NCBI GenBank assembly: GCA_037447605.1
Contig: CM074816.1
Location: forward strand, 1,950,525 to 2,014,524
Reading direction: 5' to 3'
From: Zygnema circumcarinatum SAG 698-1b
Taxonomy: Eukaryota > Plantae > Zygnematophyceae
DNA: 64,000 nt
Position 1 is the stretch's first letter. Every line of letters begins with the position of its first letter. Below the pieces are notes generated by a model. It worked only from the letters and a program-made list of their open reading frames with translations. It had not been told where the DNA came from and searched no databases. Shown piece after piece: positions 4,260 through 58,500 of this stretch. The position numbers and the translations under genes were made by a program.

Positions 4260-7200
4260 TCATTTCAACGCTTCCAAAACGAGCTGTCGAGAATCTCCAC
4301 ACTCAGAGGGGCGGTGCCAGATAAACGTGTAGCTCAGAGGGCGGTCCATCCGGAACTCCCCAACGGACGAATTGCGGACGGGCTCGTAGCCGGGGAACGC
4401 TTCGCTCGCAAAGGGAGCCACCTCTTGAAGAAAGAAGAAAGCATTTCTCGCCATCCTCTCCACCTGCAGCCCCTCGACGTCCTTCAGCACGTTATTTTAC
4501 TACTATGGGGGTTCAGACTGAAAAAAAGCTGAATATGGATATGGAACTTGTTTTGAAGAAAGTATATTTTGAATTCTCTATTTTACTACGTATATTGCGA
4601 GAAAGAGTGTGCTGATTTCGGATTCCGACAGTGCGAACGTTTTTTCTAAAGTTTCAAACCCCGTATATTACGACGAATAAAGTGAGGTCATAAACTTAGG
4701 GCCGGCGAGGAGGCAAGGGATAGATAGACAATATCGGAACCCTCTTGTTATCCGTCACATTTTCGAGGCAAGGTTCGATTTGAGGAGGGAAAACGGTTCA
4801 AAGCTTCGCCAAAGGAGGTAGGCGTCTACAGACACATAGAACAGTAGAAAAAGAAGTACTGGCTGTATGAGGAAAAAAAATTATGTTTGAAGGAGAAGGT
4901 GTGCTGGAAGAGCTGCACTCACCTTCCACCTAGAGAACTGGTCATTGCATAACGTAAGCACAACTTTCGCCTCCGTGAGTCCCATAAGGAACGGAAGACT
5001 GAGGGACCCAAAGAAGTTCGCAAATAGTCCTTGATGGCCTTCAGAATCTTCGTCGCTGCCCAGGAAGGGAAAATTCCACACCACTTTTCCGACCTTTTTC
5101 CACGGAAGAACAGGAGCCTCCCGAGCTCTGAATACCTTGCCATCTCCTTTTCTCCTCTCACCTTTCCCTCTAACACTACCTTCTGCTCTCACTGCCCGGT
5201 CTAAATAGGCGCCCACCTTTGTGGAGTCGATTCCAAAAAAGACGTGTGCTTTACATGTGCTTCTCAAAACGTTCAGTCGCAAACTCACAACAGGAAACTT
5301 TGCTACGGCAGTCGCTTCCGTATCGTACGAGGTAGCAAGAATCCGGTTCGGTTGGTCAATGACTTTAGCGAGGGCCATAGAAAACGAGAAATCTCCTTCT
5401 CCAAGCAGCAAAATTTGGTGATCGGAGTCTGCGGTGCGGTAAAGCTCACGCAGTCGTTCCATGCCTTGTTCCGTTGCTGTCGTTGAAAGGAACTCCAACG
5501 GTCCATCATCGACAGGTAAATTGGTCCGCATTGCATCCTGCCGAGTGTGCAGGAAGACGCACCTATCACCGTTTCGGCAGCCCTGCAAAAGAGGCCCGTT
5601 CAGCATATATATTCAATTTTATTTTTTATTTAATTCCTCCCCGCTTCAAGGAAGGTCAAGGTCTCCTCAACGATTCACGACCTTTTGCCCGCTTAGCTCT
5701 CCACATAAACATAACTTACATTTTGCATAGAACCCACAAAACTGCAATACATAGCATGAGAATCTTCTAATGAAAGATCGAACCCGTACCTGAGGTGATG
5801 TGAAAAATCTGCAAGTAGGAGTCTTCGTATTTGCACTTCTAGCAGGTTCTGAAGGGCCTGTATGCACGAAATGGCAACTTTCCCCACGAAAACATGATCC
5901 ATTTTGATAGAATATGCAGCTTTTTCCATTTTTATGGAGTTGCTTGCTCTCTTCACCATCTTTGGTTTGAAGTTCTGGAAATTCAGAAGTAGAAAGCTCC
6001 TGCAAAGTGGCCCAGTCTGCAGATGTTGTTCGGCTCCGAGATTCGTCCGAAGTCGTGGATTGGACTGAGAAATTGTGAGTGCCAAAACTTCCGATTCGGC
6101 TGCTTGAGTCAGTTCTACAATTCCTCAAATGTCCCTCTCCATAATGACCTTGAGAAAATGCCAAGTCATTGTCAGTTGAGTTCCTGAGTGAGGACGGGTA
6201 GGGAAAGCCTTCTTCTTGAACTCCATGGCCGTTTCTGTACTCGTGACTGAATCCGTTTTTAGCAACTGTTTCCTGTGGGGAATCCCTGTTCCATGTATCC
6301 TCAGGCGACCTTCCATTACTCGATTCATTCCCGTACTGACTTCCGCCAAACCTCTCTTCCTCCGCTTCACTCGCTTGAGCTTGAGATCTATCTGCACTCC
6401 TCTGTCCATTTTCCAGTGAAGAAAGAAAAGCACGGAACAGATAAGAAAACGGAGTCTCGTGTTCAAGAGATTCAATACGAGGTAAAACATCAAGAAACGA
6501 AAGGGATTCAAACTCTTGCCTACCTCCTGTAGAAGAGACTTCAACTTGGTAAGTGTCCCATCCGAGTGAATAGCCCGCGGATGGACAAAGGGAGTTGAGT
6601 TACACTCCTCCGCAGTTCCGCCATGAGGAGACATAATCGCACTCTCTTCTGACAAGACTAAGCCTTCAGGTCCGAGAGGCACAGGAGTTGATGCGGAAGA
6701 AACTTCGCATTCGTGAAAAGAACCGTTTGCCGTAAAGTACGACGGAGGTCCAAGGTTGTCCTCGAGAAATGCGGGCAGGAAAGTGTGCAAATTCTCTAAG
6801 GTGACATTCACTGACGAACACACGCAATAGCCAGGCAAGAACATGGTGTCAAGCAAGAGAAATTGAAAGGGATCTATCTGCATCGAGGTTATCTATATGT
6901 AATACTGAGGGAGATTGACCTCGCTATGCTCATGGAATAACAACCACCTTTACATCTTTATGACACCCCTCCTTCTCCATCAACCCATCTTCTCGCCATT
7001 CCCATCCCTTTCCCTCTGCTTGCTTCCTTTCTCCTTCTCATCACTATACCTCTAGACTCTCTTGTCTATCCTCTCATCCCCTCTTCCCTCCCTTCCCTCT
7101 CCACCTCAACGCCCACCTTCCAACCCCTCTCCCTCTTACCCGTCTCCCTCTCTCACCTGTCTCCCTCCCCCCCCATCTCCCTCTCACCTGTCTCCCGCCA

Positions 7201-10200
7201 CCCCTACTCCCTCTCACCTGCCTCCTTCCCTTACCCTCCCTCTCACCTGTCTCCCTCCAGCCCCTCTCCCTCTCACCTGTCTCCCTCTCACCTGTCTCCC
7301 TCCCCCCCCATCTCCCTCTCACCTGTCTCCCGCCACCCCTACTCCCTCTCACCTGCCTCCTTCCCTTACCCTCCCTCTCACCTGTCTCCCTCCAGCCCCT
7401 CTCCCTCTCACCTGTCTCCCCTCTCCCTCTCAGCTGTCTCCCCTCTCCCTCTCACCTGTCCCCCTGTCCCCCACCTCCCACACACCTGTCGCCCCCCCAA
7501 ACTCCCACTCACCTGTCTCCCCCCCCTCTCCCTCTCGCCTGTCAACGCCCTCCCTCTCCCTCTCACCTGTCTCCCTCGCCTCCCTCTCCCTCTCACCTGT
7601 CTCCCTCGCCTCCCTCTCCCTCTCACCTGTCTCGTCAATGGCATGCAGCGCTGACTGCAGCAGATGGTGCCGTCTGCACCACTCACTCTCCATCTCCGCT
7701 GATGGCCCTTCCACTGTTCCTCCTGCGGGGCAGAAATCGGCTTCCAGGGGGCCCTCTACCTTCACCCTCTCCGCATAATGCACAATAGCATGGAGCCTCT
7801 CCACATCCTGCAGCTTTCAAAGGTACATTGCTCATCAAAAACTGAATTTGGAGACGCAAAGCATGTATCTCCAAACAATCATACATCAGATCAAGCTGCC
7901 ACAAGGATCTGATAGGGCTCTCCATAGCCCCCATCACACCAAACTCTCGCCCCTCCGCTTCTACAAACAAAGGGCCCATTCTGAGTCCACTGCAAGTAAA
8001 AGAAAAAGCTGACGTTCAGCAGAAGCATAGGATTATGTATGCGTAATGGCCAGCATATATGGAAGGAAACGACTTTTGATTGAACAAAGACAATCAACAA
8101 TCTTCACTGCGCTTCGATAATGCGCAACCAGAAACCAAGAAAACAACAAAAACAAACTTAAGAAAATGCCACGGCTTGCATAACATTCGACAATTCTTAA
8201 AAGAGAATCACCTGAAACCAGGTACGAACCTTGAAAGTTCTCTGCCAAAACTCAAAGGCGAAGAGGTTTGCCAGATAGGCCTTGTCCATTGATGGGTGCG
8301 CCGAATACGACTCGGAAGTATCCTCGTCCGGTGGAGAATAGCTCTCTAAAAACTTTTGGTGCTGCCCACCAATACCCCATCCTCACCAAAAATCCGTCAA
8401 GTTGGGGGGCCAACAACTCACAACCTGCCAAGCTTCTTGAAACAAACCTAAAAAGTGGAACCTCAAACAGGAAAGGAGTAAGGGTACTGACCAGAGAAAC
8501 GGCGCCAAATGGTCGATTAATGGGTAAAGGGGCCGCATCCATGAGAGCAAAAAGGATCAAGCCCTCTCTCAATATGCCCAGCTTTCCACCGCGGATGACC
8601 ATAATAGCTGCTTCCAGTGAGAGAGGGAGAGTGACCAGCAGCCGCCCATATGTAGTTGGGGTATAAATTTGTCGATGATTTTTCTCGGATAACGTAATTG
8701 CATTTATTTGCACGAGGTACGACAGTGCCTTAGCCACAGTGGCTGCTTCAGGCGGGTCCATTACTCTAGAGAATAACACTGCAGAGATAGGATGGACAGG
8801 ACACGAGAGGAGAGGAGAGAGAGACGAGAGGGAGGAAAGGAAGAGCGGAAGAGACAGCAGATCGCGATAGTCAGCAAAAGAAAAGGAGAGGAAGAGATCA
8901 AGGAAACCACGATAGGTTTGAAGTTAAATGCTCCATTCCTCATCCTCCAAACAATCGCCTGGTTTCACTTTATTTCGGTAGATAAGCCCTCGTGAGTAAG
9001 CAATTTTTCCGCTTCAAAAAGAAAGATTAATTTTACTCACAAGATATTTTTCGTTAATGATAATTTCTCCCTGTTGCGGTTGATAAAGGGCGGTAACGAG
9101 GTTAATAATAGTGCTTTTACCAAAACCATTTTCTCCTTGTAAATCATTAATTTGGCCACGGACAAAACTCAAATCAATCACTGAACAGGATGTATAAGTT
9201 GTCCGTGAAAACATATGCATACCTTGGGGATCATTAAGGGCCTTATGCGATGCACATGAAAGCATCAAAACTTGCTTCCGTAGTGATAGCAGCTGCACTG
9301 CTGGGGTTTCATATTTGGCAAATTCCGTGTACGATTTCCGTGGAACTAAACGGTACACCACTCCATCGCAAGTACGACCGGTACGGCCCTTCCTCTGGTC
9401 TGCCTGGAGATCTCAGAAAATGGTCAACAATGGAAGGTAAAGACCAATACGAATGCAGCTAAGAGGGACAACTGCTTTCACTCTCCCTCCCCTTTCCTCT
9501 CCTCCCCTACCTTCAACGCACTCTCCTTTTTTCTCCTTTCATGGTCCTGCCCCGTCTTCCCTCGCTCCACACGCTCTACCTTCGTCCCCTCCCTCCTTCT
9601 CCCTCCTTTCCTCCCCCCCTCTTTTCTTTTTATCTTCCCTCCTCCCTCTCTCCCCTTCCTCACTTCAGCCTCAGCCTTTCCTTCTTGTTTCCATCCCCAG
9701 TCAAATCCCACCTCTCTCCTCTCCAATCCCGTCCTCCTTCCCACATTCTCCCCTCCATCCTCTCCTCCATCCTCCCCTTCATCAACATCTCCCTTCTTTA
9801 TGGCCCACCTGTGACTGTGACACCCAAACAATTCGAGGCATGTGGCGGTTCTCTGTCGTCAGCCAACAGAGTTCAAGATTACGGCAGAGGTCCACTACGA
9901 AGCTGACACCTGGCATTGTCACAGATGACTCGGCAATATTTGTCGCCAATACGACCTGCACTCTCCCCCTCCGCCGAAAAATGAAAGGAGCTTCCAACTC
10001 ATCTAAATTACCAACACAGGCAACTTTCTCTCCACTAACATTCTAACAAATCGACATCAAAGAGTTAGAATGCAGAACAATTTTACTCTAGTTTCCGTTC
10101 TTCCTGCTTCAATCAGGTTCACTATAACCCTCCATTCTGCTGAAGAAATGGAGCCCTAAGCCCCTAGAAACCCGAAAAGCCTAACATCCTAATATTCACA

Positions 10201-12499
10201 CCTTTCGATAGCGCGATTCCTGGGCCACCATAGCTTTAAGGCACAAATTCATGTCGATGCTGCTGTGAAGGACGAATATCTGTAGTCGCTGCCTGCACCC
10301 TTGAAGCAGTGTCCATTGATTTTCCAAACATCGATAAGTCGGTAAAAAAATAAGAATGCTCTTGCTTAAATCCGTCTCTGATGAGTGAATATAGAGAACC
10401 AGATCCCGAACAAGTTTGTGTGATTCCTGGTCAATTTTCGCATTGCTCAAAGGAGATGGAGAAGCTTCCTTTCTGTTGAAATTCTCCACAACTTCTATGT
10501 GGCTCCGTTGTTGACCAAGTTCACCAACGGCCTGTCACATGAGTGAAATGAATAAGGACTCTTTGTACAAGCTTCACAGACATCAAAGGAGACACACAGA
10601 GAGAGAGGTAGAGGGAGGCAAGAAGCTCAACAAAGCATAAAGTTCTCAAGGGATCAAGGTTTATCACCTACATTACTTTCTCCCTTCTCACCTGCTCTAT
10701 GTATTTGACTCGTGTGTCGAACAGCTGTTTCCTTAAAAACACGTTCGGGTCCGCAATTGCAATCCGCTGCACTTTTTCGCCCTGCCCGAGCTCACTGAAG
10801 TAAGTTGAATAACGCTGAAAGTCTGCTGTAGCGGACATCAACACCAATCTGCAGGTGAAAGCAGAGATCGCTGCGATGGATATTAGGATGAAGGGAAGAG
10901 AGAGGGATTTGGAAAGAATGGGAGGAGAGATAGAGGGAAATGATGGGAACAGGGTGGGGGAGAATGGACAGTCTGGTTGAGGAAGGGAGCAAAGGGAGGC
11001 GGGTAAGGGGGGAAAGTAGGGAGTAAGAGAAAGGGCGCATAGACAAGATGGAAAGGGAACCCTAACCTTGGACCTGACCTGGCCTTCAATTGCAGCTGAC
11101 ATCCACATTTGTCAAGGAACATTAAGCAATTCGAAAAAAGATAAGATCGACTATGAGCAAAAGGGAGTGACGAGGGAGGTATGAAGGCGGAAAGAAAATA
11201 GGGACAGGGAGAGTCAGAGAGCAAGGGACCATAAAAGAGACGGTGAACGAAAGAGAGAGGGAGAGGGAGAGGCGGAGAGGGAGGGGAAGAGAGAGAGGAG
11301 GGGTGCGGGGATAGGCGAGATACCGTAGGACCTCTGAGCCTGCACATGCCACCTGCTTCCTGTCCTGAATTTTAAACTAAAAATCCAAAAGTAGACTCAC
11401 CGAGCATTGACGGAGCGGAGAAGAAGCTGCTTTGCACAGGCGAGGACCAGGTCGCTCTCAATGCTGCGTTCATGCACTTCGTCGAGCACTATGACTCGGT
11501 ATCGGCTGAACACTTTTTCTCCATTGGCACGCAACTCCTCAAGCAGAATGCCCGCAGTAGCAAACACTATTCTTGACCTGAGTGTCATTCCATTTTGAGT
11601 CCACTCAAATCATTCAGTCCCATAAGCTTATGCATAAGCAATATACAAATAACTAGCCCCTTGAGGGTCAAGAATTTGAGAGTTTGGACGGGCGACCATG
11701 CCGAGAAACACAACTTATCATGTTTAAAAACTGCTTCCCCTAGCAAAACCCCACGCCTGTGGTAGAAAAATCAGACGTAACCCATTTGGCCGAGTTCACA
11801 AGGTTCACCGATATGAATTCCCCTTACGACGAACTAACCGACACAGCTTCTGATTTTCCGTACTCTCATTATCACCTCCTTCATACACATCACTTTGTCC
11901 ATTATCATATTAACATCAAGCTCTGCGGTAGCATAGAATCGTAAGCTGCATTTTCTAAAGAAAACGATACTGATAACAAGAATTTCTAGTGGATTGACAA
12001 CGATTTTCAACGGTGCACGGGAAGCAAGTCGCTCAGATTAAGCATACTTTGACGTCGAGAGATTCTTCTGGCCTATATGGTACCCAACATCTTCCCCCAA
12101 GGTGGTCTGCCTTTCTTGCGCCACTCTCTGAGAGACAGCCACCACAGCAAGTCTTCGGGGTTGCGTGCAAAGAATGGGGCCCAAACCTCCTTCTTCGAGT
12201 ATTTGGGGCACTTGAGAGCTTTTGCCTGCAACAAATCAAGATAAGGACCAGAAAGCAATTACGGAATCAGCACCTGAACAAAGTGTCCCTTCACGCTTCG
12301 TTCCTCTACGTCAAGAGACAGAAAAGAGCATGCCAGGTATGCTCATTAGTAATGAGAGGATTACTCCTATAACAATGTACTTCGGAACCTGTTTTGTACC
12401 TGATCCAGTTTCCCCATATATGAGTGTCACCGGATTTCCTTGAACCTTCTCCAATATTTGATCCTTGAATCTTCGAACCGGCAGAGTCCGGCCATCCAT
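4260..12499 (-). CDS. DExH8: DExH-box RNA helicase DExH8-like with 2 CCCH zinc fingers and a C-terminal DUF2431/BMT5-like Rossmann domain (multi-exon)
   Basis: Motifs in order are GETGSG|KSSQVPQ, CTQPRRLAVVAV, VLDEVHERS, LMSATAD, IFLPTY, LATNIAESSVT, QRKGRTGRTCDG, EWCRRHHLLQS, CIFYQNGSCFRGESCHFVH, CRFF..GCRNGDRCVFLH, ILLLGEGDFSFS and VERMARNAFFFL..RPLSYTF. The layout matches plant DExH8/C3H31 as I recall it. The start codon at 12499 is tentative. Confidence 0.88.
7140..7630. repeat. Intronic minisatellite of ~15-30 bp units with core CTCTCACCTGTCTCCC (~16 copies), including a ~135-bp higher-order duplication
   Basis: The core is directly visible repeated. The segment ~7150-7285 is nearly duplicated at ~7286-7420. 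Confidence 0.9.
8993..9179 (-). pseudogene. Fragment of a bacterial ABC-transporter ATPase domain inserted in a DExH8 intron (8779-9222)
   Basis: The AT-rich stretch reads IDLSFVRGQINDLQGENGFGKSTIINLVTALYQPQQGEIIINEKYLVSKINLSF(TGA)SGKIAYS. It has Walker A GENGFGKST followed by the typical Y-x-P-x-x-G-E-I-x-I-N and KIAY segments. Confidence 0.75.
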
Positions 12500-13267: not shown

Positions 13268-13277
13268 NNNNNNNNNN
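13268..13277. other. Assembly gap (10 N) within a GA-rich tract
   Basis: Run of N in the sequence. Confidence 0.99.
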
Positions 13278-55500: not shown

Positions 55501-58500
55501 GCAATGCAACCGCACGGTAAGTCACGAGGCCATAGTTCTCCATGGCTCCGGCCGCAAAGTCAGGAATGGCTATCATGTCCAGCTTGGGAAGCGAGTATGC
55601 TGTTCCAAAGTACCTGGAGGAGGAACGACAAGAAAGCCTCTCCGGAAAAGAGTGAGAGGGAGAATGAAGCAACGGACGGGCAAACATCCATTAGCTTCAT
55701 CAACCACATTACCACAATCAACAGAGAAAAGTGAATTCACAAGTGAATTGTTTAGCGAGTTGAAAGAGGGCGACTGCTTACGAGGCGAAAAAAGGCAGTG
55801 TCTTAACCGCCACATCAAGAGCGAATTGACCAAGATTCTGGGACCCCACTTCTGTGTACACACGTACTGGCAAACCTGCAGTCACTTTCACCCAAACTAG
55901 GGTCAGAAAACTTAAAAAAAATCCTCTGTCAAATGTTAGAACATTGACCAGGCTGAAACGAAAAAAACCATTTCTTAACATTAGGTTGATACTTTAATTG
56001 ATTAGTTCTACACCGCACGACGATCAGCGCAAAGACTAGGTTGAACCATTTGACCTTGCTCCTACGACCTAAGGATGTCGTCAGCCTCAGCAGGTCCCAT
56101 TCGACGCTTTCAGGTGGCTCATGGACTGCCGCCCAGAAGTTTACCATCCTCGGTCTTCCCTTCAATGTAATCGAACTCCCCCACCACCACCGCCACAAGG
56201 TAAGTGGACATGCGAGGGGACTCTTTGAACTTGACGATGTTTGTGTCTCCCGCGGCAGTCTCCGTGTCTACCGGCATGTTGGACAGCACCACGCGGCCCT
56301 TGGGAGCCGCCACCGTGATCACATACGTGGCCTGCGCGGGCCACCCAGAAGTCACTCCTGGGAGCAATGGCTGTCCACTGCATCCTTCGCAGGGCTGGAG
56401 GGTTGGGCATAGAGAGGCTAATGCAAACACAAGTTAGGCAGCTTGATTGCTCTTTACAACGCTGTCCCAATTTAATATTGAAATTGTTGCGACACTAAAT
56501 TATTTCTAACATGACCTTTCGCTTTCTGCATCTGGAGACATTACTTTGTTCAACAAGATACGAGCCATTACAACCTCACGTCAACTTTCCTGAATGCCTT
56601 TTGCTTTCATTACTATCACCTGAATCGTTTGCTGCCTTCCAACCTTTAAGGAGCGTTGGAAGGCACTGTTGTCATTGGTCCTACTGAAAATTAATTCGCA
56701 CATTGTGAGTGCAATTGATTGCCACCGTTTATGTAGGCAAATACAGGAATTCATTGTACCTGGTTCATCGCCACAGCTTTTCCTTCAGCGTTTCGCAAGC
56801 TTTCCATGCATTTATGTTTTTTTATCCCTAATCGTTTATGAAAATCTTCCACGTCCCCATAGAAGGCGAATTATCACACATGGCCATGAGGCGGAGTTTT
56901 AGGTGGCAAGCACGTCAGTTGATACATGAGCATTAGAACGATTGTCCGACAGAAAGCATGCGCTTAGTTGACCAACATAATGCTTTTACTAAAACTCAAG
57001 AGTGCTGTTTCAACTCTTGGTTCAATGGTGTGGGACATTAATCAAGCTGTGACCTTGTGGATGCAGATGGTCAACTGATTCAGGGCGTTGTGATTTTTGA
57101 AGTTCCACTCAAAAGGTGAAAGAGAATAAGGCGGCTTGAACAACATTACTATGGTCCTAAGCGTATTCAAAAGGCATTAATATGGGAAATTACAAATCGT
57201 AGGAATATTAGGTCAAACTATGTATTGATTTACATTGACGAAAGCAAGCGACTCCACGCTCAAATGAACCACCAATCCATTAAGTAATCACTGGCGACAA
57301 ACGGTGAAACCAGCGACCGAAGCAACCTTCCGCATAACAAAGTCACAGGCGACCAACGCGACTTGCCAGCCTGACAGCCCTGCAATCACACATTTTGACT
57401 CTGTCTATAGGTCGAGATTATTTCAACCGATTCAACGGTGAAACAAACGAGGTGGCACCCTTTGGTCATCGGTCTGAAGGTTCTTTTGGTCACAAGCATT
57501 TGTACCTATTTGTAACCAGTTCCGCCATACGAATAGCGAACCTGACGTGAACTTGCTTCGCTTCTAAGTCCAAGCGAGATGCTGGACAAACCAGGTGCTA
57601 CAAATTGCATACCAAACGATGTAACAAGGCACGTAGAACTTACCTTAAAAGAAGGTTCATCCCAACAAGGAAAGCATCTCCGCGCATCTGCAGCCTCAAA
57701 TTGCGTAACTGCCATATTCCTCTGCTCGCCCTTCACTGTGTACGTGCTGTTCATAGAAGTAGCAAATACACACTCTTAATCATTGGGGTCACCTACAACA
57801 TCGTCACCTTGGCAAGTTGTGTAAAGTGCATTGTCTACTGACCAAGAATGCAATCAGGGAAGAAAAATATGTAAAGAATACAGTATTGCCAGCTAAACTC
57901 TGAGAAATGCTCTCCCTCAAAATACTGATGATAACGAAAAGCGACGATAAAGCATTCCGCCTGATGCACACAAACAAAATGCAGTGCGTCGTACCTTCTA
58001 TAGAAACCCTTCATCTGATCGTTGAGGGTGCCCTGATACTCGATATGTAGCACCGCTTTACCAAGAGGAATGCTGCTACTGAATTTCAGGATCAGCAGTT
58101 CATCCGCCGAGTCTATCTCCATGGAAGATGGAGTCAGTTCCTGTTAATCGCATTCGACCAGCACTGAGCATGGATTTCAATGCTATTCTGACACAGGTAG
58201 TATGATTTTTCGTTGCATTGGAGGCCAGCGAGTGTGATGCAGGCAATGTCCTAGTAATCCTTGAAACACAATTCTCCTTCCTTTTAGGTTGCCCTCAAGC
58301 TTAAATGTAAACTGAATTTTTTTTTTTTTTTTAGATACGAGTGATTAAAAAACAGAAAACAAAAAAAAAAAAAAAAAAAAAAAAAAANNNNNNNNNNAAA
58401 AAAAAAAAAAAAAAAAAAAAAAAAACAAATGCAGTGCATGAAGGGCAAAAAGTCTGAAAAGACAGACACTAACATGCTTTAAAAGCTGCTCCCAGTCTTC

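Follow-up and report, generated by a model that had tools for sequence, protein, structure and literature searches.

In Saccharomyces cerevisiae, Bmt5 (YIL096C) is the methyltransferase responsible for 3-methyluridine (m3U) at position 2634 of 25S rRNA; the protein binds S-adenosylmethionine (SAM), and mutation of its SAM motif sharply reduces m3U (PMC3950682). Bmt5 is a nucleolar enzyme, and its description mentions neither a helicase nor a CCCH part (PMC3950682). The plant protein DExH8, also known as C3H31, has a length of 1015 amino acids in Arabidopsis (AtC3H31/AT2G47680; PMC2267713), equal to that of the sequence P0201 compared here. The literature searched contained no described function for DExH8/C3H31, and full-text searches for DExH8/AtC3H31 and for DUF2431 or BMT5-like proteins found no paper discussing a fusion of the two or its decay. 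We analyzed a stretch of 64,000 nucleotides from the alga Zygnema circumcarinatum SAG 698-1b (contig CM074816.1, positions 1,950,525 to 2,014,524; referred to below as the window), which carries a DExH8-type gene, predicted to be spliced from approximately 14 exons, on its minus strand at 4260–12499, as delineated from a list of open reading frames (ORFs), direct reading and tblastn. Its last two exons, designated A (4923–5582) and B (4260–4463), encode a BMT5-like domain. They are likely the end of an orthologue of plant DExH8/C3H31 composed of a helicase, two CCCH fingers and a class I SAM-dependent methyltransferase of the Bmt5 family, with an activity that would be coupled to the helicase. 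The most likely reading of the sequence is that this gene represents the ancestral, motif-intact form of DExH8, with a methyltransferase that is probably active.

Yeast Bmt5 and the window domain both belong to the Pfam family PF10354 (BMT5-like, formerly DUF2431) and have in common the motifs GxGxFSF, ATS.D, D-A/S-T and N-F-P. The window domain differs from Bmt5 in being the C-terminal module of a protein of approximately 1000 amino acids with a helicase and two CCCH fingers, and its motif IV ends in Phe rather than His. A previous reading of this DNA, made from the sequence only, had predicted a DUF2431 match, and a HMMER run found PF10354 far beyond chance: exon A matched with an E value of 1.5e-21 and 77.8 bits (gathering cut-off, 24.7) over profile positions 1–141 of 168, and exon B extended the match over positions 137–167. 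The seven motifs quoted in that reading were all recovered in the minus-strand translation, as follows.

5379–5414, minus strand: motif I, ILLLGEGDFSFS
5322–5336, minus strand: motif II, ATSYD
5220–5237, minus strand: motif III, FGIDST
5058–5078, minus strand: motif IV, WNFPFLG
5010–5027, minus strand: LFANFF
Ending at 4923 in exon A, minus strand: LTLCNDQFSRWK
4374–4397, minus strand: FPGYEPVR

A single ORF over 4260–5420 was rejected, given that this span holds an intron at 4464–4922 and hence comprises two exons.

The window domain is a genuine member of the BMT5-like/DUF2431 family, with motifs I to IV essentially intact apart from the His of motif IV. For this comparison, 70 short BMT5-like domains from an exhaustive HMMER search served to build a family hidden Markov model (HMM), to which the C-termini of fused proteins were aligned. 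Three members of this set (P0010, P0014 and P0032) are probably fragments of fused proteins, as they fall inside the fused clade in the tree described below, but the counts are not materially changed by them. Conserved columns were defined as those with one residue in at least 75% of the family set, which gave 33. Searches and structure predictions were run exon by exon, and the conserved-column count reads both aligned exon rows together. The window domain scored 128 bits (exon A) and 24 bits (exon B) against the family HMM, and algal and bryophyte orthologues scored 110–158 bits. The window protein keeps 28 of the 33 conserved columns; the five misses are Y54F, A77S, H100F, L127F and G131A, among which H100F, in motif IV, is the sole non-conservative one. 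In the SAM loop of motif I (family consensus L..GeGdFSF), residues L16, G19, G21, D22, F23, S24 and F25 all match. Motif II (ATs.D) retains its acidic residue D45 and motif III (vDAt) its D76, with Ser in place of A77, and motif IV (NFPH.G) retains N, F, P and G, with Phe at the His position. The C-terminal half of the family pattern (hvtl...W...A...F...GY...R) is matched by VVLTLCNDQFSRWK in exon A and by VERMARNAFFFL followed by FPGYEPVR in exon B, with W146, A152, F165, G172, Y173 and R177 retained.

A structure model for exon A was obtained with AlphaFold2 from a 32-row alignment and showed alternating strands and helices, with a mean predicted local distance difference test (pLDDT) score of 81 and values of 90–98 in the core. 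The top matches of this model in a Foldseek search of the PDB were the SAM-bound RNA methyltransferases YtqB/MnmM, KsgA/Dim1 and TrmB (probability of ~1, E of ~1e-3), and VIA-align gave Z scores of 8–9 with TrmN/Trm14, MnmM and KsgA, with NAD-binding Rossmann proteins intermixed. These solved class I RNA methyltransferases, including YtqB/MnmM of B. subtilis, adopt the same Rossmann-type SAM-binding fold as the exon A model, but they have no detectable relationship to it in sequence (10–17% identity) and belong to other families with other substrates, so that the likeness is one of fold only. A charged loop of 33 residues (5103–5201, minus strand), rich in Arg, Lys, Gly and Glu, lies between motifs III and IV; it is lineage-specific, with no counterpart in the orthologues aligned.

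The exhaustive HMMER search with exon A yielded 425 proteins at E ≤ 0.001, the nearest of which was 43% identical, indicating that the protein of this organism itself is absent from the searched collection. Several of these relatives are approximately 900–1160 amino acids long and contain the Pfam domains DEAD, Helicase_C, zf-CCCH and BMT5-like. This fused architecture was confirmed with Pfam in Mesotaenium endlicherianum (P0003), in the chlorophytes Myrmecia bisecta, Parachlorella kessleri and Micractinium, in metagenome proteins and in the fern Ceratopteris. A word search scored on the Mesotaenium domain returned merely 3 proteins. Word searches with fern and moss orthologues listed DExH8-named proteins together with their precomputed Pfam domains, among which PF10354 was present for the liverworts Marchantia paleacea, M. 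polymorpha, Calypogeia and Riccia, the moss Ceratodon, the ferns Ceratopteris, Adiantum and Pteridium, and the gymnosperm Cryptomeria; it was not recorded for Selaginella or for any angiosperm listed, including Arabidopsis P0201. Four orthologues, ME000243S03990 of Mesotaenium endlicherianum, Mapa_005617 of Marchantia paleacea, M758_12G048900 of Ceratodon purpureus and KAK9817283.1 of Myrmecia bisecta, have the same three-part architecture, intact motifs (with NFPF or NFPY) and C-terminal tail as the window protein, and they already carry the PF10354 annotation. Their domains are 35–48% identical to that of the window, with the 33-residue loop peculiar to the latter, and all four are hypothetical proteins without characterization. 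Public databases already carry this fused architecture as a machine annotation on orthologues, and the window gene is an ordinary member of the group.

In a FastTree phylogeny of the domain, all 30 fused domains fell in one clade (support, 0.73), within which the three probable fragments were nested. Branching within this clade mirrors the species tree, with the window domain at the base of the streptophyte part, and summed tblastn scores placed the window gene nearer to the bryophyte and Mesotaenium orthologues than to those of chlorophytes. Root-to-tip lengths were 0.6–1.4 for algae and bryophytes compared with 1.9–3.1 for vascular plants. The fusion of a helicase and CCCH fingers with a motif-intact methyltransferase, which the sequence-only reading had supposed to be ancestral, was found in chlorophytes, Mesotaenium, liverworts and mosses, and an origin at least as early as the common ancestor of chlorophytes and streptophytes is supported by this distribution of sequences.

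That reading had also held that the fused protein became a pseudo-enzyme in land plants, and that its motifs would not be equally intact in all of them. Alignment across streptophytes bore out the unequal conservation, with erosion apparent in Selaginella, ferns and gymnosperms and most complete in angiosperms. The proposed loss applies to the vascular plants sampled, with their eroded motifs, but not to liverworts and mosses, which keep 25–27 of the 33 conserved columns, like algae; a pseudo-enzyme common to all land plants was rejected because the bryophyte domains are intact. Scores against the family HMM and numbers of retained columns were as follows.

Mesotaenium: 145 bits, 27 of 33 columns
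Chlorophytes: 115–158 bits, 23–28 of 33 columns
Liverworts: 136–143 bits, 25–26 of 33 columns
Mosses: 139–149 bits, 25–27 of 33 columns
Selaginella: 37 bits, 14 of 33 columns
Ferns: 72–89 bits, 16–17 of 33 columns
Cryptomeria: 64 bits, 14 of 33 columns
Angiosperm-type sequences (n = 136): median of 37.5 bits, median of 12 of 33 columns

Motif I reads GEGDFSF or GEGNFTF in algae and bryophytes. In Selaginella it has become G-R-E, in ferns G-E-E or G-D-D, in gymnosperms G-E-S and in angiosperms D-D-T/S. None of the vascular plants sampled retains the second glycine of the motif. Among the 136 angiosperm-type sequences, Asp replaces the first glycine in 118; the second is replaced by Thr, Ile, Asn or similar residues, Leu mostly stands in place of the motif II Asp, and in most cases a deletion has removed the motif IV Asn. 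Liverworts and mosses retain ATS.D, VDAT or VDVT, and NFPF or NFPY; motif IV is NFPF or NFPY in algae as well, but in ferns and seed plants it has decayed or is deleted altogether. With one lycophyte (Selaginella) and no hornwort in the sample, the parsimonious account of these sequences is that the second glycine of motif I was lost in a single event on the tracheophyte stem. Two transcript-derived DExH8 sequences from Logan/JGI (P0167 and P0168) grouped with Cryptomeria, with G-E-S in motif I and T-I/V-T-S-F-G in motif IV, and from their sequences are probably further gymnosperms; their scores of 99–105 bits, compared with 64 bits for Cryptomeria, indicate less erosion.

Arabidopsis DExH8/AtC3H31 (P0201) and the other angiosperm DExH8 proteins also consist of a helicase, two CCCH fingers and a C-terminal domain, and they are orthologous to and colinear with the window gene. 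Homology of their C-terminal domain extends along its entire length (family HMM positions 9–178; hhalign probability of 100), but the SAM and catalytic motifs present in the window domain are gone and Pfam misses the domain. Motif I of the Arabidopsis protein reads ILVFDDSDMHFT, and P0201 reads ILVFDDSDMHFTSS at the aligned position, in agreement with the sequence-only reading, which described the Arabidopsis domain as degenerate in this region. The model for the Arabidopsis C-terminal domain nevertheless showed a seven-stranded alpha/beta methyltransferase fold with a core pLDDT of ~90. At E ≤ 0.001 it had 241 matching PDB chains; of the best 50 of these, nearly all are SAM-dependent methyltransferases or structurally close to them. 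Among angiosperms, the two halves of the domain have mean pairwise identities of 49% and 62%, whereas the helicase core has 76% and the middle region 59%. Fold and constraint retained without cofactor motifs are the signature of a pseudo-enzyme, and with the SAM and catalytic motifs lost from all sampled vascular plants, their copies look like pseudo-methyltransferases.

With regard to the gene as a whole, tblastn with DExH8 orthologues of Mesotaenium, Marchantia, moss, Arabidopsis and others gave 10–13 ordered high-scoring segment pairs (HSPs) on the minus strand, running from approximately 12496 to 4275. Helicase motifs I to VI are followed in order by the two CCCH fingers and the methyltransferase domain, and the helicase motifs GETGSGKS, TQPRR, DEVH, SAT, FLPTY, TNIAESS and QRKGRTGR were read in the exons. 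No stop or frameshift was present across the approximately 14 supported exon segments. The features are listed below in the direction of transcription; boundaries given as approximate are HSP ends.

12400–12499, minus strand: exon 1, from ATG at 12499 to GETGS of motif I, the Gly codon that follows being interrupted by the intron, with donor GT at 12399–12398 (sequence reading; tblastn, Mesotaenium P0003 residues 12–65)
12048–12225, minus strand: exon 2, rest of motif I (G-KSSQVPQ) and motif Ia (TQPRRLAVVAV) (sequence reading; tblastn, moss P0173 residues 49–103)
11400–11594, minus strand, boundaries approximate: motif II exon (DEVHERS) (tblastn; weak Pfam DEAD match)
10692–10850, minus strand, boundaries approximate: motif III exon (MSATAD) (tblastn)
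10199–10531, minus strand, boundaries approximate: motif IV-region exon (FLPTY) (tblastn)
9794–9958, minus strand, boundaries approximate: motif V exon (TNIAESSVT) (tblastn; weak Pfam Helicase_C match)
9227–9412, minus strand, boundaries approximate: motif VI exon (QRKGRTGRT) (tblastn)
8504–8779, minus strand, boundaries approximate: post-helicase exon, kept in orthologues (tblastn)
8230–8328, minus strand, boundaries approximate: exon of the ANLFAFEFWQRTFK region, in a frame different from that of the preceding ORF (tblastn)
7610–7696, minus strand, boundaries approximate: short conserved exon segment (tblastn)
6521–6823, minus strand, boundaries approximate: exon of the variable middle region (tblastn)
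5790–5933, minus strand, 5' boundary approximate: exon encoding CCCH finger 1 (C-x7-C-x5-C-x3-H) together with the initial Cys of finger 2, with donor GT at 5789–5788 (Pfam Torus/zf-CCCH; tblastn)
4923–5582, minus strand: exon A, 220 amino acids, with the remainder of finger 2 (5547–5582), a linker and strands 1–5 of the BMT5-like domain (reading, Pfam, HMM, AlphaFold2)
4464–4922, minus strand: intron between exons A and B, 459 nucleotides, GT..AG (GTGAGT...CTGCAG), phase 0 (sequence reading)
4260–4463, minus strand: last exon B, 67 amino acids and stop, with helix E and strands 6–7 (VERMARNAFFFL, FPGYEPVR) followed by a C-terminal tail common to DExH8 orthologues (Pfam, HMM, tblastn)

Exon A starts after the acceptor CTTTTGCAG and ends with the residues QFSRWK, which are followed by the donor GTGAGT; exon B opens with VERMARN after the acceptor CTGCAG, so that the V following QFSRWK is its first codon. 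The GC content of the intron at 4464–4922 is 42%, compared with 51% for exon A. CCCH finger 2 (C-x8-C-x5-C-x3-H) is complete only across the intron at 5583–5789, and the methyltransferase exon is therefore physically tied to the helicase/CCCH part.

Several further observations were made in the window and among the relatives. A fragment resembling an ABC-ATPase (8993–9179) lies inside an intron of the helicase gene, as the tail of an ORF at 9014–9361, downstream of the motif VI exon. Runs of 10 N bases, corresponding to assembly gaps, are present at 13268–13277 and 58388–58397; the former precedes the helicase start codon by approximately 770 bases and lies within a low-complexity repeat of Pro, Leu and Ser. 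Proteins of Cuscuta campestris, C. australis and C. epithymum (P0001, 1921 amino acids; P0005, 1277 amino acids) contain five to eight tandem BMT5-like domains per polypeptide, an unusual arrangement of repeated methyltransferase domains, here in parasitic plants. A metagenome protein from ENA (P0019, 737 amino acids) combines a RING finger, a CCCH finger and a BMT5-like methyltransferase, showing that the pairing of CCCH and BMT5-like domains recurs with different N-terminal partners.

Several points weigh against the most likely reading given above. The main one concerns the final residue of motif IV, which is His in 86% of the family set without fused members but Phe in the window and Phe or Tyr across nearly the whole fused clade. 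The structural matches of the exon A model are modest (E of ~1e-3; Z of 8–9), compatible with a methyltransferase and consistent with the assignment without being decisive, in part because the fold covers exon A only and the last two strands are encoded by exon B. Single-sequence and profile searches of the PDB found no solved relative of the domain, with only the CCCH fingers giving matches, and the charged loop at 5103–5201 was modeled with low confidence (block means of ~56). It is conceivable, if unlikely, that the domain binds SAM or S-adenosylhomocysteine without methylating and serves as a cofactor-sensing or RNA-clamping regulator of the helicase, in which case the change from His to Phe in motif IV would show that catalysis was lost early throughout the clade. 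The prevalence of NFPF or NFPY in almost all fused forms, compared with NFPH in 86% of other family members, fits such a regulator, as does the retention by vascular plants of the fold without the motifs, which demonstrates a noncatalytic use of the module. The N-F-P core, the acidic residues of motifs II and III and both glycines are, however, nearly invariant in chlorophytes, streptophyte algae and bryophytes, which would not be expected after an ancestral loss of catalysis, and the fused protein of the chlorophyte Micractinium retains His in motif IV. Other active N-methyltransferases, moreover, variously have Tyr, Phe, His or Trp as the final residue of motif IV.

The remaining alternatives concern the gene itself. 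That the copy is unexpressed or decaying, with the integrity of its motifs reflecting merely recent history, appears very improbable: although a foreign ABC-ATPase fragment is present in one intron, the approximately 14 exon segments are free of stops and frameshifts, and all helicase motifs as well as 28 of the 33 methyltransferase columns are kept. Retention of these motifs at only ~45% identity to the nearest known orthologues indicates long purifying selection. We give still less credence to an artefact of the gene model in which the methyltransferase exons form a separate downstream gene. Short stand-alone entries consisting of half a finger and the domain do exist (P0002 and P0004, 231–246 amino acids), but they cluster with a 1044-amino acid member and look like fragments. 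Finger 2, furthermore, is complete only if the preceding exon is spliced to exon A, and the order and phase of the exons fit full-length orthologues, including a transcriptome-derived ORF of the fern Pteridium.

For the favored reading, a motif-intact DExH8 with a working methyltransferase, the domain would bind SAM and methylate a ring nitrogen of an RNA base, and the helicase and CCCH fingers would act in cis to open up the structured RNA substrate and keep it in place. One candidate target is the N3 position of a large-subunit rRNA uridine; the actual target could differ, the analogy with yeast Bmt5 being the only basis for this candidate and a further point to be set against this reading. 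On a wider and more tentative view, to which we assign somewhat less than an even chance, the helicase-fused BMT5-like clade would constitute undescribed enzymes of the green lineage that deliver structured RNA to a built-in base methyltransferase, with a target different from the site of yeast Bmt5. When these enzymes were converted to pseudo-methyltransferases at the base of the vascular plants, a specific RNA modification would then have been lost or passed on to another enzyme; the proteins of the alga, Marchantia and Physcomitrium would be active and that of Arabidopsis a relic.

The gradient from intact to pseudo-enzyme is a testable evolutionary observation of modest interest, and what the present analysis adds is a corrected timing of the decay, which belongs to vascular plants and not to the origin of land plants. 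Recognition of the C-terminal third of DExH8 as a relic methyltransferase provides a concrete hypothesis for the ancestral role of the protein, namely helicase-coupled methylation of RNA bases. Given that the module appears from its sequence to be competent in algae and in tractable bryophytes, DExH8 may offer a natural comparison between an active enzyme and a pseudo-enzyme across the evolution of land plants.

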